Below, piece after piece: positions 1 through 62,900 of a stretch of 64,000 bases of DNA. The notes beneath the pieces were generated by a model that did no database searches, had not been told where the DNA came from, and saw nothing but the letters and a program-made list of their open reading frames with translations. A program made the position numbers and the translations under genes. The stretch's first letter is position 1, and each line of letters begins with the position of its first letter. Source of the stretch: Monocercomonoides exilis PA203 (taxonomy: Eukaryota > Protista > Preaxostyla). Location of the stretch: positions 1,054,001 through 1,118,000 of the forward strand of contig LSRY02000024.1 in assembly GCA_001643675.2 (NCBI GenBank), given 5' to 3'.

Positions 1-3000
1 AAAAACCTGACGATGAAGAATGTTGAGCTGGAAGGAGCAAGCGGATTGAGCATAACAAAGAGTTCAAGAAGAGAAAACAATGAAATTGAACAAAATATTG
101 TCATTGAGTGGAGTTTGTTTGAAGAAGTCACCCAGAACACAACAGATGATATTTCCATCATTCGGAACGAAATTGATGATAAGCCATTGAAAATTGTTAT
201 TAGAAACACAACGATGAAGGGATGTGGGGGAACGAGGTGTGGAAAGGGAGGAGGAATGTTTTGTGTGTTGAACGAGGGAGGAAGTTTTGACTGTTCGTTT
301 TGCACGATTTCCGAGTGCTTCTGCTCAACCACAGGAAGAGGCGGGTGGCTGTTTCTGGAATGCACCTCGACAGCCGAGCAGCCTCTGAATTTTGTGCTGT
401 CGAATATCACATTCAGAGACAACACCGCATTGAAGGGAAGAGATGCGTATGTTCAATGCCACTCAATTGAAACACAGATTGTTGAAGAGCAATTCCTTTT
501 GGATTTCAGAGCACCATTTGTGAAGGATCTTGCGGTGTGGGGTTGCACAACTGACTCGTTTGAAGGAGAAGAAGATCTATTGCTGAGGGTTGTAAAATAC
601 CAGAGTGAGACGATATTTGTGTCTTCAGTTGCAAACAATCACGGAGATAACAAGCAATGTGGAGAGTTTAACGCACCTTGTCGTTCATTGAATGCGGGTG
701 TTCAGCACATTATTCCTTCATCATACTCACAGCTACTGATCTCAGAGGAATCGGTAATCAATAGGGGATGTGATGCTCGTGATGTGATCATTCGCTCATT
801 AAAATCTCCTTCAGTTGCCTTGGTGTATCTGAACTCAACAATTGGTGATGATGAAGGCAGTCTTATCAGGACATCGGGAAACGTTAGGATTGAAAGATTG
901 AAATTCAGCGTTGGTCAGTTGTTTTCGTATTCAGGCAGTTCAATCATTCATGAAGCAAACGGACAACTTTCTCTTTCATTTGTTGATTTTTCTTCAATTG
1001 GAGAGTCAAATGGTATTGAAGCTGTTGTTCTGAATTCATCATTGCTGAGCATTGAAAGTGGAATTCTTCACATTGACAACTGCTCAGTGTCACTCCTTTC
1101 ATTCAAGAAGCCTTCATTTCTGTTGAGTGGAGATGAGATTTCGTTGACGAATGTGAAACTGGAAAAGATTGAATCAATAGCAAGTGTTTTTGAGCTTGGG
1201 CAATGTGGGGGTGTTGTGTTTAATGGAGCATGTGCAGATGGAGTGAAGCTGTCAGAAGGCTGTATCATTGGGATTAGCAGCTCAACCTCAGGAACAATTT
1301 CTATTGGAAGCACCTCATTCAAGAACTGCTCGAGGAATTCGGAAGGAGCTTCAGTTCTCTCTGCTTCTTCATCTTCTGCTGAAATCGTTCTTTCAAATTG
1401 TTCTTGTGAAAGCTGCAATTCTCTGTCTGACAAAGGAGGCATTATTGATGTTAATGAACTGAGGAATGTTTCAATGAACTTGTGCCAATTTTCAGGAATG
1501 GTTGCCAAAGAAAGTGAAAGCGGGAATGATAACGCATTTGAAGAAATATGTGAATGGAATGGATCGCTTGTCCATTCTGAAAACTCCGATTTACAGATGG
1601 TTGAAATTAAAATAGAGAATTCATCGAAAGGAGGAATATCGATAAAAGGAGGAAAGACTGTAATCGAGATGGGAATGCTGGCAAATAACAATCCTTTCAT
1701 TGAAAAATACCCTTCTCTTCGGCAGAATATTATTTGTTCAGATTCTGCCTCACTGACCATTTCGAGCTTGAAAGGTGGAGATGGAGTGAAGGATGACTCA
1801 TCAATGTGGATTTTGAATGATGGATGTGATTTGAGAGGGATAGCAGGAGAAAGGGCATCTCCTTTGTTCATTCCCAGACTGGAAGAAGTTTCTGTGAATG
1901 AAAGTGGAAGCAACATTGAATTGAAATTCAAGGGTTTACTTCTTCTTCCTTGTGATCTATCGTTCAGGCTTGAGTATAACACAGGGGATGTAGAATTGGT
2001 TGAGACATATGAATTTGAGGAAAGCAGTTTTGTGTCAGAAACAGAAGTGATAGGCACGATTCCTTCAGACAAGATAACAACGGTTGCGGATGAGACGGAG
2101 GTATCTGTGATGATTTTGTTTGGCGAGAAAGATGCACCATCTTCAACAGAATTATGTATTGTGAAAAATAGGAGTGACGGAGTCGCAAGCGAAGGAGTGG
2201 TGGCGAAAGAAAATAAGAAAACTGAATGGAGCTTGATTGCTTTTATTGCTGTTGCAGTTGTGCTTGTTGTTGTGGTTCTAACTTTTGTGGCAATTTGTGG
2301 GATTCGCGGAAGAAACGGGATTGCCAATGGAAAACGATGGAGCGAAACAGATACCGGAAATAAGAGCACAACAGCAGACTCTGAAGAGGAGAAAAACGAA
2401 GAAGAGCACGAGGGAGGCTTGGAGTTTATTGAAATGCCGAGTGAGCTCCAAGAAGGAGTGACAAGTGAGAGTCAGTTGCTGATTGAAGAAGAGTCAAGCC
2501 GGCTATTGAAAGCGGACGAAATAATGAATAGAAATGGAGTTCGGGCTGATAATTTAACAGCATTTTGCTCGGGCAACTTTGCCGAAGCCCAGACAGTTTT
2601 CCCAGTTTTGGTCGATCAGAAGGATGGCAACGCAGTGGTGGGTTTTTCTAATGGAGGTGGTACAGATTTGAAGAAAAAGAAAAAGAAAGAAAAGAAAAGA
2701 AAAGGCAGAAAAGAAAATCTAGAAAGCAAAGAAAATGATTTGGAGGCAACATACGATATTGAAGAAATTGAGAATAGAAAAGTGCAATTTAGCGAAATAA
2801 AGACGACATCAGAGAGATTTAGACGATCGAGCGAAGAAGAAATTCAAAAAGAAAAACTTGTTGAGAACAGTCACGTGTCTTGCAAGGAAACTAATTTGGG
2901 TTTTTCGGACTTTGGGGATGAGCAAAATGAGATGAAAGATTTTGCTGTGAATAATTCGAGCGTTTCATTTGAGGGCTCGGGAGAAATTGCGGATGCAGCC

Positions 3001-3249
3001 ATGGCAAATGAAGGTCCGATTGCTAAAGATTCGAAAACATCTGTGCTCCTAAATGAAGTGTTTGAAGCGCGTGGCAGTGGAGCCTCAACGGATTTTTACA
3101 ACGCTGAGGAAGGGATTGTTGATGGACGATTTGAAGATTGCGAGATAATCAATCAGGAAGAAAAGGTTCAAAAGAAAAAGAAGAAGAAGAAAAGGAAGCA
3201 AAAACACGAAAATATAGATGTAGTTGATCAAATGGTCGATGAAACCTAA
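1..3249 (+). CDS. Pmp-like Cys-rich type I membrane surface protein, copy 1 (5'-truncated by the window edge)
   Basis: The frame is open from base 1 (KNLT-MKNV, matching RIKNLTMKNV inside the paralogue at 51790-59247). It has GGG/CxxC beta-helix-like repeats, one TM helix (WSLIAFIAVAVVLVVVVLTFVAIC) and a charged tail with poly-Lys tracts. Confidence 0.85.
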   Translation, partial: KNLTMKNVELEGASGLSITKSSRRENNEIEQNIVIEWSLFEEVTQNTTDDISIIRNEIDDKPLKIVIRNTTMKGCGGTRCGKGGGMFCVLNEGGSFDCSFCTISECFCSTTGRGGWLFLECTSTAEQPLNFVLSNITFRDNTALKGRDAYVQCHSIETQIVEEQFLLDFRAPFVKDLAVWGCTTDSFEGEEDLLLRVVKYQSETIFVSSVANNHGDNKQCGEFNAPCRSLNAGVQHIIPSSYSQLLISEESVINRGCDARDVIIRSLKSPSVALVYLNSTIGDDEGSLIRTSGNVRIERLKFSVGQLFSYSGSSIIHEANGQLSLSFVDFSSIGESNGIEAVVLNSSLLSIESGILHIDNCSVSLLSFKKPSFLLSGDEISLTNVKLEKIESIASVFELGQCGGVVFNGACADGVKLSEGCIIGISSSTSGTISIGSTSFKNCSRNSEGASVLSASSSSAEIVLSNCSCESCNSLSDKGGIIDVNELRNVSMNLCQFSGMVAKESESGNDNAFEEICEWNGSLVHSENSDLQMVEIKIENSSKGGISIKGGKTVIEMGMLANNNPFIEKYPSLRQNIICSDSASLTISSLKGGDGVKDDSSMWILNDGCDLRGIAGERASPLFIPRLEEVSVNESGSNIELKFKGLLLLPCDLSFRLEYNTGDVELVETYEFEESSFVSETEVIGTIPSDKITTVADETEVSVMILFGEKDAPSSTELCIVKNRSDGVASEGVVAKENKKTEWSLIAFIAVAVVLVVVVLTFVAICGIRGRNGIANGKRWSETDTGNKSTTADSEEEKNEEEHEGGLEFIEMPSELQEGVTSESQLLIEEESSRLLKADEIMNRNGVRADNLTAFCSGNFAEAQTVFPVLVDQKDGNAVVGFSNGGGTDLKKKKKKEKKRKGRKENLESKENDLEATYDIEEIENRKVQFSEIKTTSERFRRSSEEEIQKEKLVENSHVSCKETNLGFSDFGDEQNEMKDFAVNNSSVSFEGSGEIADAAMANEGPIAKDSKTSVLLNEVFEARGSGASTDFYNAEEGIVDGRFEDCEIINQEEKVQKKKKKKKRKQKHENIDVVDQMVDET

Positions 3250-4010
3250 AAGTGTAATGAGAATCAAGCATTGATTGAACAAAAAAATTGTTTTTCCTTC
3301 AAATTCACTGAATTTTCGATACAAGTTTAATTGTTCAATTTTCAGTTAATACATCTATTCATTTCGATATTAATAAAAGAAACTGTTTCTATTTTGGAGG
3401 CAATGTGTATTTGATAGTTGCGTGCTCAATTTTTCAAAAAGAAACATTCCTATTTATGCTGCGAAAAGTTGTCTTTATCATGTATATTTTTGTACAAAAT
3501 AATTTCTCGTTTTTTCGTCAATGAACAATTCAAGGATCTTCCTGTATTTTTCCCTAACAAGATTGCTTTATTTTCCATTTCATTCTTGTTTTATCATTTA
3601 TTAAGCTTTTCCATTTGGGATTTATCATTTACGTTGGAAATGATTTGCTTCTCAAATAGATGGATTTTGTTCATCTGATCTTTGAAGATTATTTTTGACT
3701 TCAAAAGATAAATTTTGAATAAAGCTTGGACAAAGGGAACAATTTGAAAGTTTCAAATATATTCTATAACACTTTGTATAATCTGAAATTGAATATTTAT
3801 CTTCACATATCCTTTTAAATTCAATGGAAATGTTTGTTTCGTGAAAAAAAAAACAGTCACTTTGATTTTATTGAACAAATGCAATCTAATTCAAATCAAA
3901 ACCCTCCACAGAATTTTTCACATCGTATTTTGTTTGATAAAATTTAATTTTAATTGTTCTTTTTGTGAAAGTCTCATCAAAGAAAAAAATACTTTAATCG
4001 CATTGGAGTT

Positions 4011-12518: not shown

Positions 12519-13572
12519 AACAATCAATTCAATATGATTTCTTCAAATTTCTTAAATAAATTCGCAAATGGAATAAAGTTGTTCCAATTGAAAAAGGTAA
12601 TTACAAAAAATCCAAATTATAAGAAAAGAGTGTATTGAAGTCATCTTGAAGGAATTGAAAGGCTTATAAAGAGGATGTGATTATGAGGCTTGCAAATAAA
12701 AAGAAAAATATCATATTACCAATCCAAAGTTTAATGAACTTTTTCACTTCAATATTTCTATTTTGAAAAGTTGTTAAGAACTTATTCTTCATTTGTTAGA
12801 ATTCTTCTTATCACAGTGTTTAATGATAGTCTTTGAATAAAAATTAATTTATGAAGCCTTTTCACAAGTTTTAGTTTGAATTTTTTCAATACTCGATTTT
12901 TTCCCACATAAATCAAAATTGCTAAAAAGGATAATAAACAATATTCCATGTTTCTCTTTCTTCTCGTGAAAGTATCAAATTCTATGAGTGAAAAAAAATG
13001 TTATTTTCTCCTGCTCATTCTCTTTTTCACTTATACACACACTATTTTTTCTTTTTTTTTTTTCGAATAGTTGTCTTTTTTTTCTCCTGAGCACAAGTGA
13101 GGAATTTTTATAATGCAACTTAACCAGTTTTATCTATTGTACACAATTAAATACCGAGAAAAACATCAAAAAAGATTTTGGATTATTGAAATAGTCAAAT
13201 GTCTCAAATCATTTTTTTGTTGAAAAACTACTAATTTGAAACTGTTTTTTGGAAAATACATATAAATTTTCAACCTTTCAATTCAATACAGAATTTCACA
13301 TTTTCAATCTTAAACGGATGATTATTTTTGAAATCATTACATTTTTTTTTTTTTTATGTTAAAAATTTGATAGTTTTTCTTTTTTTATATAATTATTTTT
13401 CTACGATATTTAATTTTTATCATAATGATTTCTAAGATCAAAGTTCGATATGACTGAAAGATGGAAATGCAATTTAAAATCGTCGCACCTTTTATCATTC
13501 GAATTTAGTAAACTTATAATTCGAAATTAATAAAATTGAGAATTTTTTAATGAAAAATTTTTGAGATAAATT

Positions 13573-13778
13573 GGCAGATCCTTTTTGAAATCACACTTTC
13601 GTACGAGTTTTGATCAAAATTTTGTTTTCAATGGGATGTTGAAAAATATGAGTTGAAATAGTGAATACTTATTGTTAATGATATCGCTATTCCAAAAACA
13701 AATTTTGATACAAATCCCATTGATATCTAAATTTTGATCAAAACTCGAACGATAGTCTGACCTCAAAAAGGATCAGCC
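13573..13778. mobile_element. MITE-like element (206 bp) with ~65-bp imperfect TIRs, flanked by AATT
   Basis: The left end GGCAGATCCTTTTTGAAATCACACTTTCGTACGAGTTTTGATCAAAATTT matches the reverse complement of the right end, GGCTGATCCTTTTTGAGGTCAGACTATCGTTCGAGTTTTGATCAAAATTT. AATT lies on both sides. Confidence 0.7.
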
Positions 13779-14344
13779 AATTGGCCACTGGATGAGGATC
13801 GGAAAGTTTTTTAAATATTTCATGTTTTCAATATTCATAAAAAGGATGAGAAATTGAACCTGTCATATATTTTTTTGAATACAGATATCGCATAAAATAC
13901 CGGACAAGATCGATTTCTCAATAACTGCAAGAGGAATATTTCTAGCAATTTTTCTAAAAGTATTTCTCATCAATACAAACTCAATTGATAAACGAGACTT
14001 TCAAAATTGCTTCATATGTGCTCAGAGAAAATGATTATCGAAATTTTGGTAAAATAGGAGTTTGATTTTCTCTCCGAGATTTTAAAAATAATTTTCTCTG
14101 AGCACATATGAAGCAATTTTGAAAGTCTCGTTTATCAATTGAGTTTGTATTGATGAGAAATACTTTTAGAAAAATTGCTAGAAATATTCCTCTTGCAGTT
14201 ATTGAGAAATCGATCTTGTCCGGTATTTTATGCGATATCTGTATTCAAAAAAATATATGACAGGTTCAATTTCTCATCCTTTTTATGAATATTGAAAACA
14301 TGAAATATTTAAAAAACTTTCCGATCCTCATCCAGTGGCCAATT

Positions 14345-14550
14345 GGCTGATCCTTTTTGAGGTCAGACTATCGTTCGAGTTTTGATCAAAATTTAGATAT
14401 CAATGGGATTTGTATCAAAATTTGTTTTTGGAATAGCGATATCATTAACAATAAGTATTCACTATTTCAACTCATATTTTTCAACATCCCATTGAAAACA
14501 AAATTTTGATCAAAACTCGTACGAAAGTGTGATTTCAAAAAGGATCTGCC
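14345..14550. mobile_element. Mirror copy of the MITE in the right palindrome arm
   Basis: Reverse complement of 13573-13778. Confidence 0.7.
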
Positions 14551-15190
14551 AATTTATCTCAAAAATTTTTCATTAAAAAATTCTCAATTTTATTAATTTC
14601 GAATTATAAGTTTACTAAATTCGAATGATAAAAGGTGATTAAAGTTATGTATTCATCCATGTATTCAAAACAAATATTCTAACTGACATTTTGGATAGAA
14701 AAATAATAAAATAGAAAAGAATTTTAGCACATCGAAGAAAAAAAATCACATTGTTAATAAAAATTTGGAAATTATCCACCTCACGTAATGATAGTGATTG
14801 AAATAAAAATTGCATGTGAAAAAAAAGTTGTTTTTCAAATATTATGTGTTTGAATAACAAAAATGTTTAAATCGAATCTCTCTTTTGAAGTTTCTTAAAA
14901 GAATTACATTTGGAAAATTATTCTTAACTCCAAAAACATCAAAATGAAAATTTTTTAACTCAAAAAATTTGCTTTAATTTTTTGAATTTATAATTTCACT
15001 TTTGTGAAAAGTCCATTCTTGTTTGAGTGAAAGAAAAGAAAAATGTTTAACATAAAAAATATTCTTAAAAACTTTTTGATTCATGTTCTTATTTATTATA
15101 CTCAAAAATTTATTATTTCACATTATCAAAAGAAAAAAAAATTGTTTTTTAAAATAAATCATACAAAGAAAATATTGAAAACAACATTTG

Positions 15191-16111: not shown

Positions 16112-16284
16112 CTTAAATATCTTTTGCTTAATATAATAAGTTTAAGAGTTTTACATTTCCTGATCTGGGAGAAAAAATAATACAGTTATAGGTCGATCAT
16201 TGTTTTTTTTTATTTTTCAACTGAAAAAAGCATTTAAAATCTTTCTTTACACGTTCGTTGCATTTAAAATTTAAAAGCTCATCA

Positions 16285-31200: not shown

Positions 31201-31974
31201 TCAACAAATCAGCAAGATTCAATGGCCAACAAGTCAATTTTCAATCCCAATGCTTCCATTCAGCCAACTGCATTGCCTTATCATTCGACATCTGCACTGT
31301 CGTATATTCCTCCTTCGATTTTTCCTGCTCAGAAAGTAGACTTGTCGAAGGAGCAGGAGAATCCTTCTGTTATGTACAAAGGCCGCAAAGTCGTGATAAG
31401 CTTCAAGGGAGGAAGCGAAGGCAATAAAAAGAGTGAGAGCCAGCCAAATAGCATCCCAGATAATTCTCCTTCATCATCATCTTCTTCTTTTTCATTTTCT
31501 CAACAGAGTGCACACGTACCTATGAACAATCCTGAAACAGGATCTGCTCAACCTGCACAGCCTGCTATTAGCGAAATGGAATTAAATGTGACAGAAACTA
31601 CGAAACCAAAAAAATCAAGTCGGCAATCAAAGAAAAAGAGGAGTGTTTCTCCAGTCAGCAGCAATTTGCCTATTGATTCTGGCGATTCACCGTTTAATGA
31701 GTCAGATTCCGATACAGAGTCAGACGATTTCTTTATGGACGACGAAATCAAATTGCTTGAGCAGATAAATCAGACGCGTATGCAACAGGCAGTTCAAGAA
31801 CAGAACACTCAAGTTTTGAGCCAGCCAAACATGCCACTGCAAGCGCAGGCTGCTCCTTCTGTTGCGAGCAGCCCGCCTTCTGTGGGATCGCCAGTGGGAG
31901 ATGCTGATGGAGCGAGTGTTTCGTTGAGGAGAAGGACGAGAGTTGGCTCGATTCCAAAGAGATATTTGGATTAA
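16285..31974 (+). CDS. Chromodomain-helicase DNA-binding protein, CHD6/7/8/9 (Kismet) type, ~5229 aa in one ORF
   Basis: Two chromodomains ([32 protein letters not shown]) precede the SNF2 ATPase motifs [31 protein letters not shown] and [21 protein letters not shown]. Subfamily-III-like C-terminal motifs are [30 protein letters not shown] and [21 protein letters not shown]. First ATG is at 16285. Confidence 0.93.
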   Translation: [5229 protein letters not shown]

Positions 31975-40553: not shown

Positions 40554-41101
40554 AATAGAAATTCATCAATGAAATAAATTGTAAATAGGCCTTTTAGGAA
40601 ATATATATATATATATATACTTAGAGATTTCTCTACATCAATTTTATATATATATTTTTTTTAAGTTTATTTTCATTTATCCTTTTCTTATCTTTTTATT
40701 TTTGAAAACAAAGAGTTTTTAGAGATGAAAAAATTTTGTTTTTAAACAAATATTTTGATTGTTGCGAATTTAAATAAGAAATCAAAAATATATCTCTTTA
40801 AAATAAAAGAATGTTCCAAATATTAATTGAGAAAGACAACTTTCACGTTAAGTTTTGAAAAAATAGGCGAGATATTATCTGATTGACAGACGAGTTGAGC
40901 AAAAATTCAAAGAGGACATGAAAAGCACTCTTTTTTTAATTATTTTAAAATTATTGTTATTTAGCGAAACTTCGTCTGTCATGTTCAGTTTTGAAAATGT
41001 TAAAAATAAAAAAATAATGGGTGCGATCATGAGCTGATATTGTTCCGGTGAGATATTTATTTATAGAGTTCGCAAATGTTGATGAACCCTGTTGTTTGCA
41101 T

Positions 41102-51442: not shown

Positions 51443-51678
51443 ATGCAAACAACAGGGTTCATCAACATTTGCGAACTCTATAAATAAATATCTCACCGGA
51501 ACAATATCAGCTCATGATCGCACCCATTATTTTTTTATTTTTAACATTTTCAAAACTGAACATGACAGACGAAGTTTCGCTAAATAACAATAATTTTAAA
51601 ATAATTAAAAAAAGAGTGCTTTTCATGTCCTCTTTGAATTTTTGCTCAACTCGTCTGTCAATCAGATAATATCTAGCC

Positions 51679-54600
51679 GAATAGATGTATTAACTGACAA
51701 TTGAACAATTAAACTTGTATCGAATATTCAGTGAATTTGAAGGGAAAAAAATATTTTTGTTCAATCAATGCTTGATTCTCATTACACATTTAGGTTTCAT
51801 CGACCATTTGATCAACTACATCTATATTTTCGTGTTTTTGCTTCCTTTTCTTCTTCTTCTTTTTCTTTTGAACCTTTTCTTCCTGATTGATTATCTCGCA
51901 ATCTTCAAATCGTCCATCAACAATCCCTTCCTCAGCGTTGTAAAAATCCGTTGAGACTTCACTGCCACGCGCTTCAAACACTTCATTTAGGAGCACAGAT
52001 GTTTTCGAATCTTTAGCAATCGGACCTTCATTTGCCATGGCTGCATCCGCAATTTCTCCCGAGCCCTCAAATGAAACGCTCGAATTATTCACAGCAAAAT
52101 CTTTCATCTCATTTTGCTCATCCCCAAAGTCCGAAAAACCCAAATTAGTTTCCTTGCAAGACACGTGACTGTTCTCAAAAAGTTTTTCTTTTTGAATTTC
52201 TTCTTCGCTCGATCGTCTAAATCTCTCTGATGTCGTCTTTATTTCGCTAAATTGCACTTTTCTATTCTCAATATCTTCAATATCGTATGTTGCCTCCAAA
52301 TCATTTTCTTTGCTTTCTAGATTTTCTTTTCTGCCTTTTCTTTTCTTTTCTTTCTTTTTCTTTTTCTTCAAATCTGTACCACCTCCATTAGAAAAACCCA
52401 CCACTGCGTTGCCATCCTTCTGATCGACCAAAACTGGTAAAACCGTCTGGGCTTCGGCAAAGTCGCCCGAGCAAAATGCTGTTAAAATATCAGCCCGAAC
52501 TCCATTTCTATTCATTATTTCGTCCGCTTTCAATAGCCGGCTTGACTCTTCTTCAATCAGCAACTGACTCTCACTTGTCACTCCTTCTTGGAGCTCACTC
52601 GGCATTTCAATGAACTCCAAGCCTCCTTCGTGTTCTTCTTCGCTTTTCTCCTCTTCAGAGTCTGCTGTTGTGCTCTTATTTCCGGAATCTGTTTCGCTCC
52701 ATCGTTTTCCATTGGAAATCCCGTTTCTTCCGCGAATCCCACAAATTGCCACAAAAGTTAGAACCACAACAACAAGCACAACTGCAACAGCAATAAAAGC
52801 AATCAAGCTCCATTCAGTTTTCTTATTTTCTTTCGCCACCACTCCTTCGCTTGCGACTCCGTCACTCCTATTTTTCACAATACATAATTCTGTTGAAGAT
52901 GGTGCATCTTTCTCGCCAAACAAAATCATCACAGATACCTCCGTCTCATCCGCAACCGTTGTTATCTTGTCTGAAGGAAGCGTGCCAATCACTTCTGTTT
53001 CTGACACAAAACTGTTTTCCTCAAATTCATATGTCTCAACAAACTCCACATCCCCTGTTTTATACACAAGCCTGAACGACAAATTGCAAGGCAGCAGCAG
53101 CTTCCCTTTGAACATAACCTCCCTTTCTTCTCCTTTCTCCCTTGTTTCAACACTCTCCAACACTGGAATGAAGAATGGAGATGCTCTTTCTCCTGCGATT
53201 CCACCAAGTGTGCATCCATCATTCAAAATCCAAAGCGAAGAATTGGGCATCACACCGTCTCCCCCTTTCAAGCTCGAAATGGTCAGTGAGGCAGAATCTG
53301 AACAAATAATATTCCTTCGAAGAGAAGGATATTTTTCAATGAAAGGATTGTTATCGAAAAATTCTCCTTTCTCAATCGTCACATTGCCTGACGACAAAGA
53401 CATGCCGCCTGACGAAGCATTCAATATCGAAACATCTTTCGTCATCAATGAAGTATTTGATAAATGGACAAGCGATCCATTCCATTCGCATATATCCGTG
53501 ATTGTATTCATATTGTCGTTTTTGCTTTCTTTTGCAACCATTCCTGAAAATTGGCACAAGTTCATAGAAGCATTCCTCAGTTCATTAACATTAATAATGC
53601 CTCCTTTGTCAGACAGAGAATTGCAGCTTTCACAAGAACAATTTGAAAGAACGATTTCAGCAGAAGATGAAGAAGCAGAGAGAACTGAAGCTCCTTCCGA
53701 ATTCCTCGAGCAGTTCTTGAATGAGGTGCTTCCAATAGAAATTGTTCCTGAGGTTGAGCTGCTAATCCCAATGATACAGCCTTCTGACAGCTTCACTCCA
53801 TCTGCACATGCTCCATTAAACACAACACCTCCACATTGCCCAAGCTCAAAAACATTTGCCATTGATTCAATCTGTTCTAGTTTCACATTCGTCAACGAAA
53901 TCTCATCTCCACTCAACAGAAATGAAGGCTTCTTGAATGAAAGGAGTGACACTGAGCAGTTGTCAACATGAAGAATTCCACTTTCAATGCTCAGCAATGT
54001 TGAATTGAGAACAATAGTTTCAATGCCATTTGACTCCTCAATTGAAGAAAAATCAACAAATGAAAGAGAAAGTTGTCCGTTTGCTTCATGAATGATTGAA
54101 CTGCCTGAATACGAAAACACCTTACCAATGTTGAATTTCAATCTTTCAATCCTAACGTTTCCCGATGTTCTGATAAGACTGCCCTCATCATCACCAATTG
54201 TTGAGTTCAGATACACCAAGGCAACTGAAGGAGATTTTAATGAGCGAATGATCACATCACGAGCATCACATTCCCTATTGATTACCGATTCCTCTGAGAT
54301 CAGTAGCTGTGAATACAGAGATGGAATGATGTGCTGGACTCCAAAACTCAATGAACGACAAGGTGCGTTAAACTCTCCACATTGCTTGCTGTCTGTGTGA
54401 TTGTCTGCAACTGAAGACACATATATCGTCTCACTCTGATATATCATAACCCTCAGCAGAAGATCTTCTTCATCCACAAACGAGTCTGTTGTGCAGCCCC
54501 ACATCGCCAGCTCTTTCACAAACGGCACTCTGAAATCCAGCAAGAACTGCTCATCAACTATTTGTGCATCAATTGAATGGCATCGAATATACACGTCTCT

Positions 54601-55038
54601 CCCTCTCAATGCAGAGTTGTCTCTGAATGTGATATTTGACAGCACAAAATTCAGAGGCTGCTCGGCTGTCGAGGTGCATTCCAGAAACAGCCACCCGCCT
54701 CTTCCTGTGCTCGAGCAGAAGCACTCGGAAATTGTGCAAAACGAACAGTCAAAACTTCCTCCCTCATTCAACACACAAAACATCCCTCCTCCCTTTCCAC
54801 ACCTCTTTCCGCCACATCCCTTCATCGTTGTGTTTCTAATAACAATTTTCAATGGCTTATCATCAATTTCGTTCCGAATGATGGGAATATCGTTGGTTAT
54901 GTTCTGGGTGACTTCTTCGAATAAACTCCACTCAATGACAATATTTTGTTCAATTTCATTGTTTTCTCTTCTTGAACTCTTTGTTATGCTCAATCCGCTT
55001 GCTCCTTCCAGCTCAACATTCTTCATCGTCAGGTTTTT
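51679..55038 (-). repeat. Inverted segmental duplication of window positions 1-3360
   Basis: Coordinate sum is constant at 55039 (13/55026, 3249/51790, 3360/51679). It includes 111 bp of 3' flank. Confidence 0.93.
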
Positions 55039-58000
55039 GATCCTCAAAATCGTTGCCGACAACACAGAAATAACATCCTGTGAAAAGCTCAACAATTGCA
55101 TTGTCACAAAGTCCAACACAACTGTCCCTCCTTCTGCTTTGATCAGCCCATAATTAATCATGTCCTCTCCGCTTTCTTTCATTTTTGTGAATGAGCAGTC
55201 TTTCACAGTCAGCAATCCCTCGCTTGAGCCAACATGCATCAAAACATTCACTCCACTTGCGAAAGATGATGTAATCGCAAAGTTAATCAGTTCGAAATGC
55301 GCCATACCCTGAATCTTCATTGCTGCTCCTTCTGCTCCTTCAAGCGATGAGACACATTCCAAAGAGCAAATGCTGCTGCTATCCTTCGATTTTATTGAAG
55401 CTCCACTCACATCAACACTTTTCCGAAGATATCCTTTTCCAATGATGCTGACATTCCTTTCATTTCCTTCTGACAATCTCATTAACGAATAGTCAATTGA
55501 CAAGCAAGGATAATCTGAGAATCCACAGGCGTGCATATCTTTTCCTTTGTCTCCAATATATATCTCTGAGCCAATCGCTTGCCAGAAATAAATCAGCGGA
55601 ATGACATTTGTTGTGTCATTTCCATCAAAGCCTCTCAGGGAATTCAATGAAATATCTGCCAGATGCCCAGAAACAAATGGAAGAGAAGTGTTTGTGATGC
55701 TCTTCGTCAAGTTGGAAGATTCAACAAACACATCATTTCCATATTTTGCAATATTTGGCTTGTCTGCATCAAAAACAGGGGACGAGATCACAAACGAAGA
55801 ATCGTCATCAATCAACTTCAGTGCCATCCCTCCCCCAAACCCATTCTTCTCTTCTCCAGCTGGTGCTGTGCATCCTGTGAATGTGCACGAAACAATATTC
55901 AATTGAGTATTCCCTTTCAACTTTGCATTGATAGCCCCTCCTCTGCTTCCATCACCAGCCACAGAACATCCATCAAAATCACATTCTTCAATATTTATTT
56001 CTCCATTTGAATTTTCATCATGACTGTTGTCAATGCTCACACAGCTTCCATTTCCAGCTGCCCTTTCGATTTCTGTAAAATTGCTGTTCGTCATGTTCAG
56101 CCAGGGAGTATTCATAAACTCAGCCTCTGTGCTGCTTCCTGACAAAGAGATCAATGGACTTCCACTCAAAGCGATTGATGAAGCTGAGAATTTGTCGATT
56201 ATCAGGATCCCTGACTCAACTGACAAGAATAAAAATGCCAATTCTGATGAAGGATCTTGAAGAGTTAAAGAACATTGAGACAAAGTCAGTGATGAAGAAG
56301 AAGAAGAAATGAAAGTTGAGCGCGATGAAAGAGAAGATGGAAGAGAGAAGATGAGTTTTGATAATTCTGTTTCAACACTTGCTGTTATCATTGCTGAGTT
56401 TAATGGTGAGCTGGCATCAGACACAGTCCAACCACTTTGATCATCATTTCCTTTGATTTCATGTTTCTGTTCTTCAAATGCCAATTCATCGCTCATCAAA
56501 ATCATTCCACTCACAACAACTTTCTTTGTTTCTGTTTGACGTGTGAGTGAGTGCTTCATTGTCAAACAAGGGAATTGGACGATTCCACAATGAGAATGAT
56601 CAGTTGCCTCAATGTTATTCACACATATTTCTGAAGGGCTGGGAAGGAGATAAATACACAGTGGGATGGCCACACTCGTATTTCCATTGTCATATCCTCG
56701 CACTTTGTCAACAGAATCTGATGATGAGGTTACACATGCAATTTTTCTTGAAGTTGCAGTTTCTTCCAGATTGGGCGATAAGACGAAGATGTCTCTTCCC
56801 CATTTGGCCGTGTTTGTGCCAAAGGAAGAAGAAATCAAGAAATCTGGATTTTCATTCAATAATCGAAGAAGAATTCCTCCCCCAAGACCATTGGATGACG
56901 AACAAAAGCAGCCATCAAAAGCCCCGTCTTTCACCTTCACTTCATTCTCATTCCCTGCACACAGCATCATCGATCCCCCATCAGCTGATGTTGTGCTTCC
57001 ACATCCTTCAAATGTGCACAAATTCAGATCGATATTTGCCTTGTCATTCGAAAACGACATCACAGCTGATCCGCTCGTTGTTCTTTCAATCCCATCAAAT
57101 GAACATTCTGAAAGTGCCAATGAGATTTCATTTGTCGAAGAAAGTGAAAACAACGAGGTTGTTGAGATTGTCTTTGCCCAGTTCACATGTTCCATCCGCA
57201 TCATTCCTCCCTGAACATTTATCATCTCAGTGGTGAACGCTGTTTCTGAAAAATACTCACTTCCAGTAGATATGTTCAACCTGCTAATATGCATCTCTCC
57301 TGTTCCAGTGATCTCAAACAGCCTTGACCAACGATTATTTGAATGAGACGAGTCATGCATAAGAATAAAGTCTCTGACAGACAAGATGCCTGTTGAGACT
57401 GAAAAAAGAGACAAACCAGATATCTCAAATTCAATTTGGATTGCTGTGCTCATATTGCTTTGACCATAAACAGAAAAAGTGTTGGCCCCACAATCAAAAC
57501 AATTTGTTTCGATTATCGTTCCTGAAAATACTTCCACATTGGGAACCAAGTCTGGAATTAGCTGAGTAAGACAACGACTGATCGTGCTGCATGCATGAGA
57601 TTCATCCAGCCCACATGCATAGGTATCTTTTGAATTAGGTTGCGTTTCATTCGAAGAAACAAATCTGACTCTTCCGAAATCGTTTCGAAGCCATTCGCTG
57701 CGATCAACAATTGAATATAAATTTGCACAAACTCTATTTGATGTTTGTCTCGTTGAATAGCAACTGGAATCTATATTGCTGGATGTTGAATCCTGAAGCA
57801 AAACATCGTGGCCATATTTAACGCATGTGTTATTGTGGAAAAAGCAAAAATAAAGCAATACTCCCTGATTATATTGACTTATTAATATTCCAACAGCACC
57901 TCCCCAACACATTGAATAACAATGACAAAATAAACAATTTGAAATGACAACTTTATCCAAAGGATTCCAATGAATAATTGCACCTCCTGTTCCAGTGAGT

Positions 58001-59247
58001 GAATCATTTGCTCGACAAATTCTGAAGAATGAGTTAATAATGCAATGTTTTTGTTTTTGAGTCATAATTTCAAAATAACTCAATGCTCCTCCATCATTGG
58101 CAGCAGAACAGTTATTAAATAAACAATCTTCTACCATTGGCTGAACATTTATTGATTCAAACTCAATCCCCCCTCCTCCGAAATCTGAAGTGCCAAATGC
58201 AGCACATTGATCAAATGAAGAATGGAGCACAATGCATTCAGCAATTTTTTGAGCATATATCCCTCCGCCTCTTGTTGATGAAGCACTGCATCTTGTGAAT
58301 GAAGAATTTTCAACAATCAGAATGGCATTTGCATTGTCATGAACATAAAGAGCTCCTCCATATGGGGATGTGCAATCAACCCATTCACACAATGAAAAGG
58401 ATTGACTTTCTGTTGTGTCTATTCGTTGTTTTCTTTCAAGTTCATTCGCCTCTCTTTTCCCAAAGTGTGAAGAAATATTTTTGCAAACAAACTCTTGTGA
58501 AGAAAAAGCTCCACTTGAAATCCCTCCTTCAAAGATATTCACACAAGAATAAATGAGGCAGTTCTCCATCGAACTTCGAAAACACGAATGCTCCATCAGA
58601 TAATCACTGCTTTTGAATGGCTTCACAGAAATGTTCCTGAAGGTGCAGTCATTGATCTGTTCGCTTTTGCTCTTCCCAGACAATAGGAAATTGTCTGAAG
58701 CTGAAACAGCTAGGTTCGAAATGACAGAATTTCTCAAAATGACTGAATTGGAACCATCAGATGAAAATACGAGACTGGATGAATAAATTCCATTTGCGTG
58801 GAGCATGCTCATGTTTGTGAGGCAGATTGACCCACTTTGTAAATGAAACGGAGATGCAGATTTTTGGCGTGAAATGCAGGAATCCATCATTATGCTTGAT
58901 TTGCCTGTAATAAGAACAAATGGCGAGGAAGAATATTCAAGTGCCACGTTTTTCAGTCCAACCGAAGAATTGAAAAATCCAAAAAATGTATTTATTGATG
59001 AAGATGCTCCGTTCTGCCACCTTTTTCCCCAAAGAGAGATATCTGGATTAAGTTCATTAGCTTTTGTGCTTTTTTCAAGAAAATGTTCGTCTTTTGTTCT
59101 GTTCCCATTCAAACAGGCTTGGAAATATTGAAAGCGAGAATCCGCGCTTGCTTCTTGGTTTTCAAGTGAAGAAGTCTGCGTGACACATTGCCCTTCAAAA
59201 ATATTGGCAAAGAGCAACCACGAAAAAAGAAGCCAATGCACGATCAT
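51790..59247 (-). CDS. Pmp-like Cys-rich type I membrane surface protein, copy 2 (2485 aa, single ORF)
   Basis: Signal peptide; repeated GGA(L/I/V) and GGG(I/M) with FxxC/FxxN motifs (GGALYV, GGGIYA, GGALSY, GGAIIH, GGAVGI, GGAINA); CGxxxxPC motifs; one TM helix and a charged tail. Confidence 0.9.
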   Translation of the reverse strand: MIVHWLLFSWLLFANIFEGQCVTQTSSLENQEASADSRFQYFQACLNGNRTKDEHFLEKSTKANELNPDISLWGKRWQNGASSSINTFFGFFNSSVGLKNVALEYSSSPFVLITGKSSIMMDSCISRQKSASPFHLQSGSICLTNMSMLHANGIYSSSLVFSSDGSNSVILRNSVISNLAVSASDNFLLSGKSKSEQINDCTFRNISVKPFKSSDYLMEHSCFRSSMENCLIYSCVNIFEGGISSGAFSSQEFVCKNISSHFGKREANELERKQRIDTTESQSFSLCEWVDCTSPYGGALYVHDNANAILIVENSSFTRCSASSTRGGGIYAQKIAECIVLHSSFDQCAAFGTSDFGGGGIEFESINVQPMVEDCLFNNCSAANDGGALSYFEIMTQKQKHCIINSFFRICRANDSLTGTGGAIIHWNPLDKVVISNCLFCHCYSMCWGGAVGILISQYNQGVLLYFCFFHNNTCVKYGHDVLLQDSTSSNIDSSCYSTRQTSNRVCANLYSIVDRSEWLRNDFGRVRFVSSNETQPNSKDTYACGLDESHACSTISRCLTQLIPDLVPNVEVFSGTIIETNCFDCGANTFSVYGQSNMSTAIQIEFEISGLSLFSVSTGILSVRDFILMHDSSHSNNRWSRLFEITGTGEMHISRLNISTGSEYFSETAFTTEMINVQGGMMRMEHVNWAKTISTTSLFSLSSTNEISLALSECSFDGIERTTSGSAVMSFSNDKANIDLNLCTFEGCGSTTSADGGSMMLCAGNENEVKVKDGAFDGCFCSSSNGLGGGILLRLLNENPDFLISSSFGTNTAKWGRDIFVLSPNLEETATSRKIACVTSSSDSVDKVRGYDNGNTSVAIPLCIYLLPSPSEICVNNIEATDHSHCGIVQFPCLTMKHSLTRQTETKKVVVSGMILMSDELAFEEQKHEIKGNDDQSGWTVSDASSPLNSAMITASVETELSKLIFSLPSSLSSRSTFISSSSSSLTLSQCSLTLQDPSSELAFLFLSVESGILIIDKFSASSIALSGSPLISLSGSSTEAEFMNTPWLNMTNSNFTEIERAAGNGSCVSIDNSHDENSNGEINIEECDFDGCSVAGDGSRGGAINAKLKGNTQLNIVSCTFTGCTAPAGEEKNGFGGGMALKLIDDDSSFVISSPVFDADKPNIAKYGNDVFVESSNLTKSITNTSLPFVSGHLADISLNSLRGFDGNDTTNVIPLIYFWQAIGSEIYIGDKGKDMHACGFSDYPCLSIDYSLMRLSEGNERNVSIIGKGYLRKSVDVSGASIKSKDSSSICSLECVSSLEGAEGAAMKIQGMAHFELINFAITSSFASGVNVLMHVGSSEGLLTVKDCSFTKMKESGEDMINYGLIKAEGGTVVLDFVTMQLLSFSQDVISVLSATILRIKNLTMKNVELEGASGLSITKSSRRENNEIEQNIVIEWSLFEEVTQNITNDIPIIRNEIDDKPLKIVIRNTTMKGCGGKRCGKGGGMFCVLNEGGSFDCSFCTISECFCSSTGRGGWLFLECTSTAEQPLNFVLSNITFRDNSALRGRDVYIRCHSIDAQIVDEQFLLDFRVPFVKELAMWGCTTDSFVDEEDLLLRVMIYQSETIYVSSVADNHTDSKQCGEFNAPCRSLSFGVQHIIPSLYSQLLISEESVINRECDARDVIIRSLKSPSVALVYLNSTIGDDEGSLIRTSGNVRIERLKFNIGKVFSYSGSSIIHEANGQLSLSFVDFSSIEESNGIETIVLNSTLLSIESGILHVDNCSVSLLSFKKPSFLLSGDEISLTNVKLEQIESMANVFELGQCGGVVFNGACADGVKLSEGCIIGISSSTSGTISIGSTSFKNCSRNSEGASVLSASSSSAEIVLSNCSCESCNSLSDKGGIINVNELRNASMNLCQFSGMVAKESKNDNMNTITDICEWNGSLVHLSNTSLMTKDVSILNASSGGMSLSSGNVTIEKGEFFDNNPFIEKYPSLRRNIICSDSASLTISSLKGGDGVMPNSSLWILNDGCTLGGIAGERASPFFIPVLESVETREKGEEREVMFKGKLLLPCNLSFRLVYKTGDVEFVETYEFEENSFVSETEVIGTLPSDKITTVADETEVSVMILFGEKDAPSSTELCIVKNRSDGVASEGVVAKENKKTEWSLIAFIAVAVVLVVVVLTFVAICGIRGRNGISNGKRWSETDSGNKSTTADSEEEKSEEEHEGGLEFIEMPSELQEGVTSESQLLIEEESSRLLKADEIMNRNGVRADILTAFCSGDFAEAQTVLPVLVDQKDGNAVVGFSNGGGTDLKKKKKKEKKRKGRKENLESKENDLEATYDIEDIENRKVQFSEIKTTSERFRRSSEEEIQKEKLFENSHVSCKETNLGFSDFGDEQNEMKDFAVNNSSVSFEGSGEIADAAMANEGPIAKDSKTSVLLNEVFEARGSEVSTDFYNAEEGIVDGRFEDCEIINQEEKVQKKKKKKKRKQKHENIDVVDQMVDET

Positions 59248-59993
59248 CCAGAATAAAACAAATAATTGAGAGCAAATAAAAAGTATTTTTCAGTTGATCA
59301 AAATGGATTTATCTTTTTTTCTGTTCACTTTTCGAGGCTTTGAAGCCTGTGTTGTTGATCACGTCAATGACACAAAAAGAAGGAGTGTTTTCAATAACAA
59401 ACAAAAAAACTAAAGAATTGATGTCTTTTCTTCAAGCCTGGTACCAGTTGGTTCATTTCATCCTTCATGTTTGAGTTTGCTCAATATTTTAGAGATTTGG
59501 TCTCACTTTGAAAAAAAATGCGTTTGAGATTTTTTGATGAAGAATTGAAGTTCAATTTTCGAAATGAAAAGTTATAATTTATATGTTTTTTTTGGTTGTT
59601 TTTTCTTGAATTTTCAAAGAAAAACACAAAAATTGAAAGTCATGAAAGAAATGAGAAGAAAAATAAAAAAGCCTAATTATTATATTTTCAATTGTGATTG
59701 TTTGCAATTCACTCAAGATCCAAAGACATGAAAACAAAAATGTCGTAAATGAAAAACGAGATAAATGCGATTTGTTGAAAAATCTCGTTCTCAACTCTTC
59801 CTTTTGGTGACTTTCTGTTTTCATTTACAACAAAAACACAAGCACACAACTGCTTGGTGCATTACAGATTGCTATACCAATCATTTTTGCAACTTTTCCA
59901 TCAAACAACATAACATTTTATACTTTTCCAACAAGCATGAAAGAGAAAAGAAAAGAAAGAAAGAAAAAAAAAAAAGAATAGAAAATAAGCAGC

Positions 59994-62900
59994 TTATTTT
60001 GCAGACTTCTTCCCCACAATCCTCGGGGAAGGCTTGTAGACAGAAGACGGCGGAGTTTCGCTGAACACAGCCGGCTCTCCTCTCTCGTCGCTGCGGCTGC
60101 GAGAACTCGAATGCGATGGGCGATACGACGATGACGGCGAAGAATAAGAAGGAGACTTGTAGCGGGGCGTCTGGTAGCTCGAGTGGGAGTTTGGCTTGAG
60201 ATAGTATCCGTTCGTGTCCTTTGTGGGCGAAGGGGAGGAGTAGGGGCTGCTCGACAGGTACGACGAGGACGAAGGAGAAGGAGAAGGAGAAGAAGGAGAG
60301 CGAGAAGAAGAATAAGAAGAAGGCGATGAGTAGAGAGAGGCAGAAGGCTGAGTGGGGAAGAAAGAGGAGGCATCGCGTGCTGATGAGCGGGTGGGGCGGC
60401 TGGTATCGCGGTAGCCGAAGCGGCGGAAATCAGTCACGTCTCTGCTGTTTGTGTGCTCGTCCTTCAGCTGCGATGGAACTTTTAGTCATAAAATGAATGG
60501 AAAAGAATATTGTTTGCAAAAAAGGAAAACAAAGAAAAGTGAGATTGATACAGAAAAATTACAAAAATAAAATAAAATAAACTTTTCAATAAACATTTCT
60601 GTAAGGCACACTTTTATCAGCACATTTCCCCACAAAGTCGACATTCACCCTGTTTTTCAATGCCTGGCATCTGGAACTGTATTTTTTTAAATAATGAAAA
60701 AGAATAGAAATGGAACATGAATATGACAATAATAATAACAACAAGAAAAAGAAGAAGCATCTCAAACGTGTAGTCTGCTCCGTCGCATCCGCAGAAAGTC
60801 TGTCCAGTTGGATTTGTGTTGAGCACAACTGCATCTGCATCGCCTTCGCCTGTGTCTCTTCTTCTCTGCCGCTCTTCCTTCTCTTCTCTCTTTTCCCTCT
60901 CTTCCCTCGCCCTCCTCTCTCTCCTCTCCTTCTCGCTCGCCTTCTCCTTCTCCCTCTCCATCGCCTCCTTCTCTGCCATCACCTCCTCTTCGCCTTCGAT
61001 CACCAGCTTCCCTTTCATCAGCGCCTTCATCTCTTTCTCTCCGAGTGTCACATCGTCCTCACACACATCTGGCGCATACCCACACACCCCTTCAATGCTG
61101 CTGTTCCAACACGCCCCGTCTGGCTTTCTGTGGATCGTTGTGGAGAAATCAATAGACAAGAAAAAGATAAAAGGAAGAAAGAAAAGACATGACAGAAATA
61201 TTCAAAACCCAATCACAGAAAAATGAAGTCGTATTAATAAATGTGCATGTCAAAATAAAGAGAAGAGCCAATGAAGAGTCAAATAAAGAAATCAATAAGA
61301 AAAACACAAAAGCAACAAAAGATGTTGCAAAAGAGACAAACATGCACATTTCTCCTGGTCTGCAGTCAATGTCATACGCACAGCTGATCTTCTTCTGTGT
61401 CTTTGAGCCCAACGAAGAAGAAGAATAAGAAGGAGAGGCAGAAGAAGACGAAGTGAGGGAAGAAAGCGCAGTGGAAGGCAGAGAATAAGGCGAAGGCGCT
61501 GCGAAAAGCGGCTGCTGCACGTTGAACTGCTGATTGCGCAGGGCAAACGAAGAGAACGAGGCTGTTTGTGGAGTCATTGAAGGAATGGCAGACACATCTG
61601 ACAGTTTTGGTGGTTGAGAAGAAGAAGAAGGAGAAGAAGAAGAAGAAGCAGAAAGAGGGAAGTTCTGTTCCATTCCCAGTGTCTGATGGAAGCCAGAGGA
61701 AGAGGAAGAGCGAAGAGGGTCAGTTGACTTCACCACTTTCTCTGAGTGTGTGTTGGTTGTTGATTTGTGGGTGGAGAAAGAAGGAGGAACAGAAGAAAAG
61801 AGCTTGGAAGGAGAAGAGAAGGAAGAAGCAGTTAAAGATGGAGAAGAAGAAGGAGAAGGAGAAGGAGAAGGAGAAGAGGATGATGAGGATGAAGGTTGTT
61901 CATAGAAAGGTGTGGAAAAGTGAGAAGGCGGAGAAAAAGGAGTGTAGAAGGAGGAAGGCGTTGATGGGTCTATTGGCGTTGATGTTGAGAAAGAAGGGAT
62001 GAAAGAAGAAGACGATGAAGTTGAAGGAGAAGAAGAGGGAGAAGAAGAAGATGAAGAAGAAGAAGGAGAAGGGAATTCAGGAATAGAGATTGGAGAGAGA
62101 GGCGGGAGTGGCTCATCGAACAGCGAGGAAGAAGGAGGCAAGTCAGAAGAAGCGAAAGAAGAAAACTGAGAAGGTGAAGAAAGCGGGCGAAGAGGCTGAG
62201 AAGCATCTGCCCCTGCCATTTTATGCACAGCCACATTCTCATTCACTTTCTGTTTTGTGTGTTGATTTCCAACAATTTCATCATTCCTCTTCTTCATCAT
62301 CATCTTCTGTTCTTCTTCTTCTTGTTGTTGGTGTTGTTGTTGTGAGCTGTTGTGTCTGAGAATGTCAGCTACGCTGCTGTCGTCGAAGGAGGGTGAGAGA
62401 GCATTCGCCATCAGAGGAAGAAGCGTGTGGCGTGGTAGAGGCGGATGAGACGAGCCAATGGCTGTATGCGGAGGTGCTGTTTGAACGAATTCTTTGCTTT
62501 GCTGCTTTGCCAGCTGCTTCTCAGCAGGTTCTTTGGATTTTTCGGCAGCTTCCTTTTTGAGGTGCTCTTTCAGCTTTTCTTCCTCCAGCAGCTCATCTGC
62601 TGACTCATATCTCGAAAACTCCTTCTTCTTTATGTCTGCTTTGCTTGGCTGTTTGTGCTCTTCATTGGAAGTATTTTCGTTTTGTATGGCTTCATCAACT
62701 TCTCTTTTTGGATATCTTCCATTTTCTTGCATGCTGTTAAATTTCTCTCTCGCTACACTTTCTGAATCAATTGTCATTGTATCGTTCGTTTCTTCTGCTT
62801 CTTTTTTCTTTCTTGCAGCTGATGATGATGCTGCATTGCCAACTTCATAGCGAGATTCTTTCACTTCAATCTTCTCTTCACCGTTGGCATTCATCTGCCC

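Follow-up and report, generated by a model that had tools for sequence, protein, structure and literature searches.

Clusters of receptor-like kinase and receptor-like protein genes in plants, Xa21 and Cf-4/Cf-9 among them, belong to large families whose single-pass receptors vary in their repeat ectodomains; paralogue mosaics arise there through gene conversion and unequal crossing-over, and kinase and kinase-less forms coexist. Mosaic gene formation also belongs to the programmed antigenic variation of trypanosome VSG and Borrelia vlsE. The gut protist Entamoeba histolytica has a large single-pass family of receptor kinases and pseudokinases, the TMK family, with variable cysteine-rich ectodomains (CXXC repeats). 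Here we describe two receptor-like genes, copy 1 and copy 2, in a 64,000-nt stretch of the genome of Monocercomonoides exilis PA203 (C19:1054001-1118000 of an assembly of 82.3 Mb in 101 contigs; hereafter the window). The two genes are near-identical over long stretches and differ sharply in discrete blocks of their ectodomains. This mosaic very probably arose by ectopic (non-allelic) gene conversion among paralogues after a young 10.4-kb duplication.

M. exilis is a model eukaryote without mitochondria. Its largest gene family, annotated as 'protein tyrosine kinase' (TKL) and counted at 332 genes in 2019 (PMC6759080), has been presented in the genome papers solely as kinases (PMC6759080; PMC8767320), and unclassified repeats overlap genes of this family (PMC8767320). 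The term 'gene conversion' does not occur in the 2019 genome paper (PMC6759080). Our full-text literature searches returned no paper on gene conversion within the TKL family of Monocercomonoides and none on the ectodomains of the family.

Block divergence within a young inverted duplication

Copy 1 and copy 2 lie in the two arms of an inverted segmental duplication of 10.4 kb (C19:1046991-1057372 and C19:1116031-1105667), which in window coordinates extend from -7009 to 3372 for the copy 1 arm and over 51667-62031 on the reverse strand for the copy 2 arm. The duplication takes in 2.8 kb of upstream flank and 123 nt past the stop codon, and the receptor copies of the two arms are ~48 kb apart. 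Copy 1 is a single open frame of ~2,484 codons, running from the DNA upstream of the window (L001) into the window and ending in a stop codon at 3247-3249; the ATG at window position 13 is internal to it, and the true gene start is ~4.2 kb upstream of the window. The open reading frame (ORF) of copy 2 is complete, with 2,485 codons (Table 1). Copy 1 (window 1-3372, forward strand) and copy 2 (55038-51667, reverse strand) align with a constant offset and zero indels across 1-3372. Position i of copy 1 pairs with 55039-i, and block coordinates for comparisons with copy 2 are often given in copy 1 numbering. Homology between the arms ends abruptly at 3372/51667.

Identity between the arms is 97.4% in the upstream flank, 87.6% in the ectodomain and 98.8% in the transmembrane (TM) helix and tail. 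Plotted in 60-nt bins, the divergence of the two copies is blockwise, not uniform: identity is 0.92-1.00 along most of the alignment and dips to 0.77-0.90 at 421-735 (block A), 0.48-0.70 at 1501-1685 (block B) and 0.50-0.83 at 1785-1980 (block C). Similar blocks continue beyond the window, in the upstream L001 part of the gene. A sequence-only reading of the window had proposed this architecture, with sharp blocks at 430-660, 1513-1685 and 1786-1980 in copies that align without net indels and share a near-identical TM helix, tail and 3' flank. The bins and the continuation of homology through 3372 bear this out, with block A extending to ~735, and the peptides and anchors quoted (the latter ICEWNGSLVH and NNPFIEKYPSL...SLKGGDGV) are both present as written.

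Synonymous divergence sets the blocks apart from the remainder of the gene. By the Nei-Gojobori method (NG86), the synonymous divergence (dS) between copy 1 and copy 2 is 0.018 in the TM helix and tail and 0.05 at 736-1500, and it rises in the blocks to 30-80 times the tail value (Table 1), at a ratio of nonsynonymous to synonymous divergence (dN/dS) of 0.18-0.35. In a duplicate that is 1-2% diverged, dS is saturated in blocks of 200-300 nt; by this measure, the block versions are old imported sequence and not the product of fast mutation. The saturated dS and the dN/dS values together ruled out that the blocks stem from rapid point mutation or from positive selection on new mutations.

Third copies of most blocks are present elsewhere on the same contig, at the loci L002 (C19:959000-968999), L003 (C19:925500-935499) and L004 (C19:1265500-1275499, reverse strand). 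Block B of copy 1 is 100% identical to C19:961890-962093 in L002 and to C19:928368-928571 in L003, 92 and 126 kb upstream, and 96% identical to C19:1268526-1268731 in L004, 211 kb downstream. Copy 1 also matches L002 at 99-100% across most of 712-1149, 1354-1698 and 1885-2093. Copy 2, for its part, is 100% identical to L002 at 1120-1269 and 91-97% identical to it at 424-623, and it matches L004 at 91-98% over 1825-2034. In sliding windows, similarity among copy 1, copy 2 and L002 is interleaved through the entire 6.3-kb ectodomain. When each block was searched individually in the genome, donors were found for B and C of copy 1 and for A and C of copy 2, and none for B of copy 2 or A of copy 1.

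The near-identity of the flank, TM helix and tail has a simple explanation, because the genome contains no other DNA similar enough to convert them. DNA homology of copy 1 and copy 2 to the rest of the family stops at about window position 2123, just ahead of the TM helix. The tail of copy 1 and copy 2 reaches only 25-36% protein identity with other genes, mainly in the TM helix and juxtamembrane part, and a recent donor for the tail was ruled out on this ground.

Statistical tests of exchange agree with the distribution of third copies. In the quartet of copy 1, copy 2, L002 and L004, informative sites are divided 156, 95 and 60 among the three possible groupings and fall into 92 runs, compared with 193 +/- 8 after permutation. 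Of the 782 sites in the 6.3-kb ectodomain that distinguish copy 1 from copy 2, L002 has the copy 1 letter at 492, the copy 2 letter at 235 and neither letter at 55; those at which it takes sides form 147 runs, compared with 319 +/- 12 under permutation. A GENECONV-style test on condensed variable sites identified a stretch of 187-269 consecutive variable sites shared by copy 1 and L002 at ~1354-1698, at the permutation floor, and shorter tracts between copy 1 and copy 2, copy 2 and L002, and copy 2 and L004 likewise reached the floor. In a segment tree for block B, copy 1 groups with L002 and L004, while copy 2 falls in the opposite deep clade. The approximately unbiased (AU) test rejected a clade of copy 1 and copy 2 for block B (p ~5e-77) and for block C (p 9e-6).

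The sequence-only reading had attributed the mosaic to exchange with other family members, and this view is upheld by third copies at up to 100% identity, the dS excess, the AU tests and the re-assortment of blocks B and C described below. The history that we propose starts from the 10.4-kb inverted segmental duplication, which is young, lies on a single M. exilis chromosome piece and has copy 1 and copy 2 as its arms. After the duplication, ectodomain patches of ~50-350 nt would have been overwritten independently in each copy by paralogues. The main conversion partner would be the L002/L003 pair, 92-126 kb off on the same contig, with the truncated L004, 211 kb off, and more distant members as further partners. 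For B and C, transfer most likely ran from an L002-type gene into copy 1, and copy 2 would have kept the older state. The simplest history would have a common ancestor holding the copy 2 state of B and the copy 1 state of A, with each copy later overwritten elsewhere, mostly by L002-type sequence. We infer both the direction of transfer and the mechanism, which would be homologous-recombination repair with an ectopic template. The process itself is ordinary gene conversion in the largest gene family of the organism and involves no new kind of mechanism.

Several points weigh against this explanation. In the assembly, block B of copy 2 has no genome relative above 83% and block A of copy 1 none above 88%; with no near-identical donor, these states would have to be ancestral to the lineage, or their donors lost, overwritten or unassembled. 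The AU test did not reject a clade of copy 1 and copy 2 for block A (p 0.24) or for the middle segment (p 0.06), and its block limits were set after seeing the data, the sister hypothesis being taken from the flanks. The pairs in the family tract test are not independent of one another. Linkage of the patches within one molecule is beyond the reach of short k-mer contigs, and L002 and L003 retain homopolymer indels after the short-read polishing of the assembly.

The two blocks without a close donor are also what would be seen if copy 1 and copy 2 were old duplicates kept alike by arm-to-arm conversion, the blocks being stretches that escaped homogenisation and not imports. Conversion between inverted repeats at a distance of 48 kb is possible, and copy 1 and copy 2 do share tracts of 100% identity, for example at 1210-1446. 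However, such a history leaves unexplained why B and C of copy 1 are 99-100% identical to L002/L003 and why copy 2 falls in the opposite deep clade for block B, and the dS of 1.3-1.5 in the blocks is as high as the divergence found across the entire family, or higher. As exchange with third copies is needed anyway, we regard this history, which we consider extremely improbable, as a timing variant of ectopic conversion after a young duplication and not as a true alternative to it.

Two-type cassettes and the partner genes

The pattern is not confined to the two copies. A DNA search of the genome returned 703 family candidates, and 41 members were aligned over the last 1.9 kb of the ectodomain. 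When the GENECONV-style tract test was extended to this family alignment, 120 of the 819 pairs reached the permutation floor, compared with ~2.7 expected; pairs at the floor include copy 1 with L002. Pairwise identity is bimodal in blocks B and C, at ~0.75-0.79 within a type and ~0.58 between types, and unimodal in block A and the middle segment. Each of the four possible B x C combinations is represented in the family (counts of 6, 5, 15 and 6). Copy 1 and L002 are B-I/C-1, copy 2 is B-II/C-2, L004 is B-I/C-2, and many other members are B-II/C-1.

The occurrence of all four combinations implies that the conserved 94-nt anchor between B and C has repeatedly served as an exchange point. The earlier description of cassettes between anchors thus applies to B and C, which are two-type cassettes re-assorting across a shared anchor. 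By family conservation and type combinations taken together, only this B/C anchor behaves as a demonstrable exchange point. The idea that block edges in general coincide with exceptionally conserved DNA anchors was rejected, as conservation across the family varies little, with values of 0.72-0.93 in bins of 30 nt.

The main partner genes form a duplication of their own. L002 and L003 are a second young pair, at least 9 kb long, ~33 kb apart and 99.9% identical, with differences almost only in homopolymer length (T6/T5, A4/A3 and similar). Over 9 kb, 2 substitutions and 6 homopolymer indels of one base each separate them, and their reading frames break at different places. These breaks look like residual Nanopore error, which short-read polishing probably could not fix because the near-identity of the two loci made mapping ambiguous; gene models at L002 and L003 are probably split artificially. 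Reading the breaks as Nanopore error, we treat both as intact full-length genes with a TM helix and a half-kinase tail. A role for L002 and L003 as silent pseudogene donors was ruled out, the breaks being confined to homopolymers and differently placed in each copy. L004 is of another kind. It is 5'-truncated, is interrupted by an in-frame TGA and shifts out of frame ahead of the TM helix, and it combines a block B of copy 1 type with a block C of copy 2 type. From these features, L004 is a probable pseudogene, itself recombinant, that still takes part in exchange. Most family matches, by comparison, lie in open frames of 2,400-4,000 amino acids (aa) with no stops.

The sequence-only reading had gone further and suggested an undescribed surface-variation system of the VSG/vlsE kind. 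In such a programmed system, a donor archive would supply sequence for the highly frequent rewriting of one or a few expressed receptor genes, and the cells of a population would display differing ectodomains. Several features of the locus would fit such a system: the patches lie in the ectodomain, between a near-identical flank and tail; the tracts are short and numerous; some are 100% identical, hence recent; two blocks act as exchangeable two-type cassettes; and L004, with its 5' truncation, in-frame TGA and frameshift, resembles a silent cassette. The partner genes argue otherwise, since L002 and L003 are full-length genes that each have a TM helix and a half-kinase tail, and since only L004 is clearly broken among family matches that are mostly open. 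Among the family loci we found no archive made mainly of silent, incomplete cassettes, and no expression site. Sequences of copy 1, copy 2 and L002 type all occur in RNA-library contigs from bulk culture, which, unless the libraries contained carry-over DNA, speaks against one-copy expression at the population level. The locus is embedded among housekeeping genes, namely those for a CHD/SNF2 remodeller, a UCH protease and a LysM protein, and the distance to the contig end is at least 219 kb. Exchange tracts are a general feature of the family; many tracts are 91-97% identical to their nearest relative, which makes those events old; dN/dS is below 1 in the blocks; and the constancy of the tail is explained by the lack of homologous templates. 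On this evidence the claim of a new variation system is not supported, and we consider a programmed system very unlikely.

A related scheme is combinatorial diversification. Frequent mitotic gene conversion would shuffle two-type cassettes (B, C and probably further ones upstream), and would take some of its templates from broken copies such as L004. If this were true, an M. exilis culture or gut population would contain many receptor variants, and the family would be a commensal eukaryote's counterpart of mosaic VSG formation. We hold this scheme to be very improbable, and a high-rate somatic process about equally so.

Read support for the assembled copies

The assembly was built from Nanopore reads with Canu; polishing followed, first by Nanopolish and afterwards by Pilon on the basis of 2x300 reads (PMC8767320). 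With hundreds of similar family copies, such a procedure might generate a mosaic where none exists: the two copies could be truly identical, or their blocks could derive from other paralogues, pasted in by the Canu consensus or by Pilon. The homopolymer indels of L002 and L003, resembling uncorrected Nanopore errors, are of the kind that this would leave, and block B of copy 1 is exactly the L002 sequence, with linkage over the identical stretches lying beyond the reach of contigs. Both ORFs, however, are intact at ~2,485 codons, and no indel separates copy 1 from copy 2 over 3.4 kb. Block B of copy 2 and block A of copy 1 are absent elsewhere in the assembly and so could not have been borrowed from an assembled locus. 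Blocks of 200 nt fit well within single Nanopore reads, and the mosaic signal recurs in 120 other family pairs of varied divergence.

Read evidence was available as short k-mer contigs, which break wherever paralogues share more than 31 nt. The genome-unique block A of copy 1 is matched with 0 mismatches by DNA contigs from 2016 (597-734) and 2022 (522-624) and by RNA-library contigs from 2024 (391-485 and 597-691). A 2016 DNA contig (2073-2551, 0 mismatches) spans the junction of ectodomain and tail in copy 1, including position 2123. A separate 2022 contig carries the six tail variants of copy 2, two of which are found in an RNA contig. Another RNA contig, at 1131-1574, shows five differences and is of L002 type. 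A contig joint, 1437>1541, came from one contig with 20 letters on its shorter side and was set aside as paralogue noise. The RNA contigs suggest that at least three paralogues, of copy 1, copy 2 and L002 type, are transcribed in bulk culture, with the proviso that RNA libraries could hold carry-over DNA.

These contigs bear directly on an assembly or polishing artefact. The exact copy 1 block A recurs in contigs from the independent 2016 reads and from RNA libraries, one 2016 contig crosses the copy 1 junction, and the six copy 2 tail variants are held by a contig of their own. A polishing chimera is unlikely because the ORFs are intact, indels are absent and two block versions are unique in the assembly, and we judge it highly unlikely that the blocks as a whole are an artefact of this kind.

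Receptor architecture, the surrounding locus and known systems

Copy 2 begins with a hydrophobic stretch resembling a signal peptide, followed by an ectodomain of ~2,200 aa with 84 cysteines and 38 N-glycosylation sequons, a single TM helix and a cytoplasmic tail of 315 aa that is acidic and rich in E and K. This layout is that of a putative type-I membrane protein, for which we infer a location at the cell surface. An AlphaFold (AF2) model of the last 706 ectodomain residues, built from an alignment of 29 family members, is all-beta, with a mean predicted local distance difference test score (pLDDT) of 69.6; most of residues 240-500 score above 85. The leading Foldseek matches in the PDB are without exception right-handed parallel beta-helix proteins, including phage tailspikes, the AlgE6 epimerase and a fucoidan lyase, at weak scores (E 1e-4 to 1e-2, TM-score 0.2-0.38). 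The ectodomain is accordingly predicted to be a right-handed beta-helix. Pfam searches with copy 1 and copy 2 gave nothing, including for Chlam_PMP and kinase, even at E<=1, and leads from a protein atlas were weak (all below 0.9: TIG, DUF1565/Chlam_PMP/beta-helix and a Preaxostyla cluster) and were taken as hints only. The description of the proteins as Pmp-like therefore stands in part: the predicted beta-helix fold and motifs of the GGxI type support it, whereas no Pfam match to Chlam_PMP was obtained at E<=1, so that the term does not extend to membership of that family.

A protein search with the ectodomain returned 249 matches; the 120 listed are all M. exilis proteins (MONOS_*) or the window's own, with E = 0, and among these matches listed, protein identity is mostly 50-86% and most carry PF07714. 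By this similarity, copy 1 and copy 2 are kinase-less members, sharing the ectodomain, of the receptor-like family known as 'tyrosine kinases' (TKL). In L002, the PF07714 match in the tail is limited to the C-terminal lobe (profile positions 160-257 of 258, 28.5 bits). The sequence-only reading had spoken of a surface coat, which is misleading for proteins whose relatives are receptor-like, with a half-kinase tail.

Tails without a kinase occur in other members too. Several family genes of ~2,900 codons have a kinase-less tail with 25-34% identity to that of copy 1 and copy 2 over its full length. One of them, L049 (C15:1172000-1176200, reverse strand), is a family gene of 2,912 codons on C15 whose tail is likewise without a kinase. 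In one BLASTP comparison of tails, the identity was 33% over 181 aa. The similarity of these tails suggests a distinct kinase-less tail class within the family.

Table 1. Features of copy 1 and copy 2 in window coordinates, with dS between the two copies and closest relatives in the genome
Feature	Position	Strand	Remarks
Copy 1, last 3.2 kb of gene	1..3249	+	open frame continuing from L001
Block A, copy 1	421..735	+	77-90% vs copy 2; dS 0.66; best relative in genome 88%
Block B, copy 1, type I	1501..1690	+	100% vs L002 and L003; 96% vs L004; dS 1.34
Anchor between B and C (NNPFIEKYPSL...SLKGGD)	1691..1784	+	B/C types re-assort across it
Block C, copy 1, type 1	1785..1985	+	3' part 99-100% vs L002; dS 1.53
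Point where DNA homology to all other family members stops	2123	+	beyond, only copy 2 is similar
TM helix, copy 1	2227..2304	+	
Cytoplasmic tail, copy 1, 315 aa, no kinase domain	2305..3249	+	no kinase match at E<=1
Duplicated 3' flank of copy 1	3250..3372	+	duplication end at 3372
Copy 2 arm of the 10.4-kb inverted duplication	51667..62031	-	partner C19:1046991-1057372
Copy 2, complete ORF with signal-peptide-like N-terminus	51790..59247	-	
TM helix, copy 2	52735..52812	-	
Block C, copy 2, type 2	53054..53254	-	nearest relative L004, 91-98%
Block B, copy 2, type II	53349..53538	-	best other genome match 83% over 157 nt, 77% full length
Block A, copy 2	54304..54618	-	91-97% vs L002

The 48 kb between the copies hold a CHD/SNF2 remodeller, a UCH protease and a LysM gene. 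The first is a giant CHD-type chromatin remodeller in one open frame of 5,238 codons (16258-31974, forward strand), with SNF2-related, Helicase_C and weak chromo matches. The LysM-domain ORF (38982-40553) contains 12- and 18-nt tandem repeats at 39243-39814. Three neighbouring ORFs gave no Pfam match at the threshold used for ORFs (E<=0.01).

Two inverted repeats lie in the same interval. One is a near-perfect palindrome of 10.8 kb (40866-51678), with arms 99-100% complementary. At its outer end (51678) it shares 12 nt with the copy 2 arm, which ends at 51667; either the palindrome itself or a mobile element within it may have played a part in how the inverted duplication formed or where it was bounded. 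The other (13486-14637) has arms of 564 nt that are 99% complementary around a 24-nt spacer, contains nested 86-nt repeats, lies in a stretch of 27-28% G+C, and is possibly a foldback element or one resembling a miniature inverted-repeat transposable element (MITE). At its upstream end (window 62031), the duplication cuts an ORF of 862 codons (61149-63737, reverse strand) that has no Pfam match, so the copy 1 arm holds a partial copy only (L001 2974-4419, forward strand).

The pair serves as a natural clock: its flank and tail are ~1-2% diverged, and yet its ectodomains show a dozen or more rewritten patches. So many patches in a young pair imply that conversion of receptor genes is frequent on an evolutionary time scale. 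The membrane-proximal ectodomain holds two-type cassettes that re-assort freely, and functional studies should regard the ectodomain as made up of modules open to exchange. For this family, gene trees, orthology calls and copy counts will be unreliable, and short-read polishing and read mapping within it are risky. All this concerns the largest gene family of an organism studied for its lack of mitochondria, a family known in the genome papers just as 'tyrosine kinases'.

Among known systems, the closest is the M. exilis TKL family itself, with which copy 1 and copy 2 share a homologous ectodomain, at 68-80% protein identity to ~250 MONOS_* proteins, and the layout of signal peptide, ectodomain, TM helix and tail, and from which they differ in a tail without a kinase or kinase remnant. 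The chlamydial Pmp proteins (PF02415) are alike in a predicted beta-helix, a large paralogous family and motifs of the GG[AGS][IVLM] and F..[NC] types, of which copy 2 has 11 and 21. They differ in being bacterial autotransporters with a beta-barrel, where this eukaryote has a single TM helix and a 315-aa tail, and copy 1 and copy 2 have no PF02415 match. The Entamoeba TMK family resembles the M. exilis family, by description, as a large single-pass receptor family of a gut protist with variable cysteine-rich ectodomains; those ectodomains, however, consist of CXXC repeats, in contrast to the predicted beta-helix here.

Two comparisons concern the process. With VSG and vlsE, the locus shares segmental, templated replacement in an ectodomain gene from paralogues, including at least one pseudogene-like copy (L004), but here the replacement runs on an evolutionary time scale and across a whole family, and several paralogue types occur in RNA libraries. 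With the plant receptor clusters, it shares single-pass receptors, mosaic ectodomains and, in M. exilis too, forms with and without a kinase; the plant ectodomains consist of leucine-rich repeats and not of a beta-helix, the lineage is another, and a role in recognition is established in plants only. To these systems the locus adds a dated young duplicate pair, two dimorphic cassettes re-assorting family-wide and a kinase-less tail variant. The instance is new, and the process is one already known in kind.

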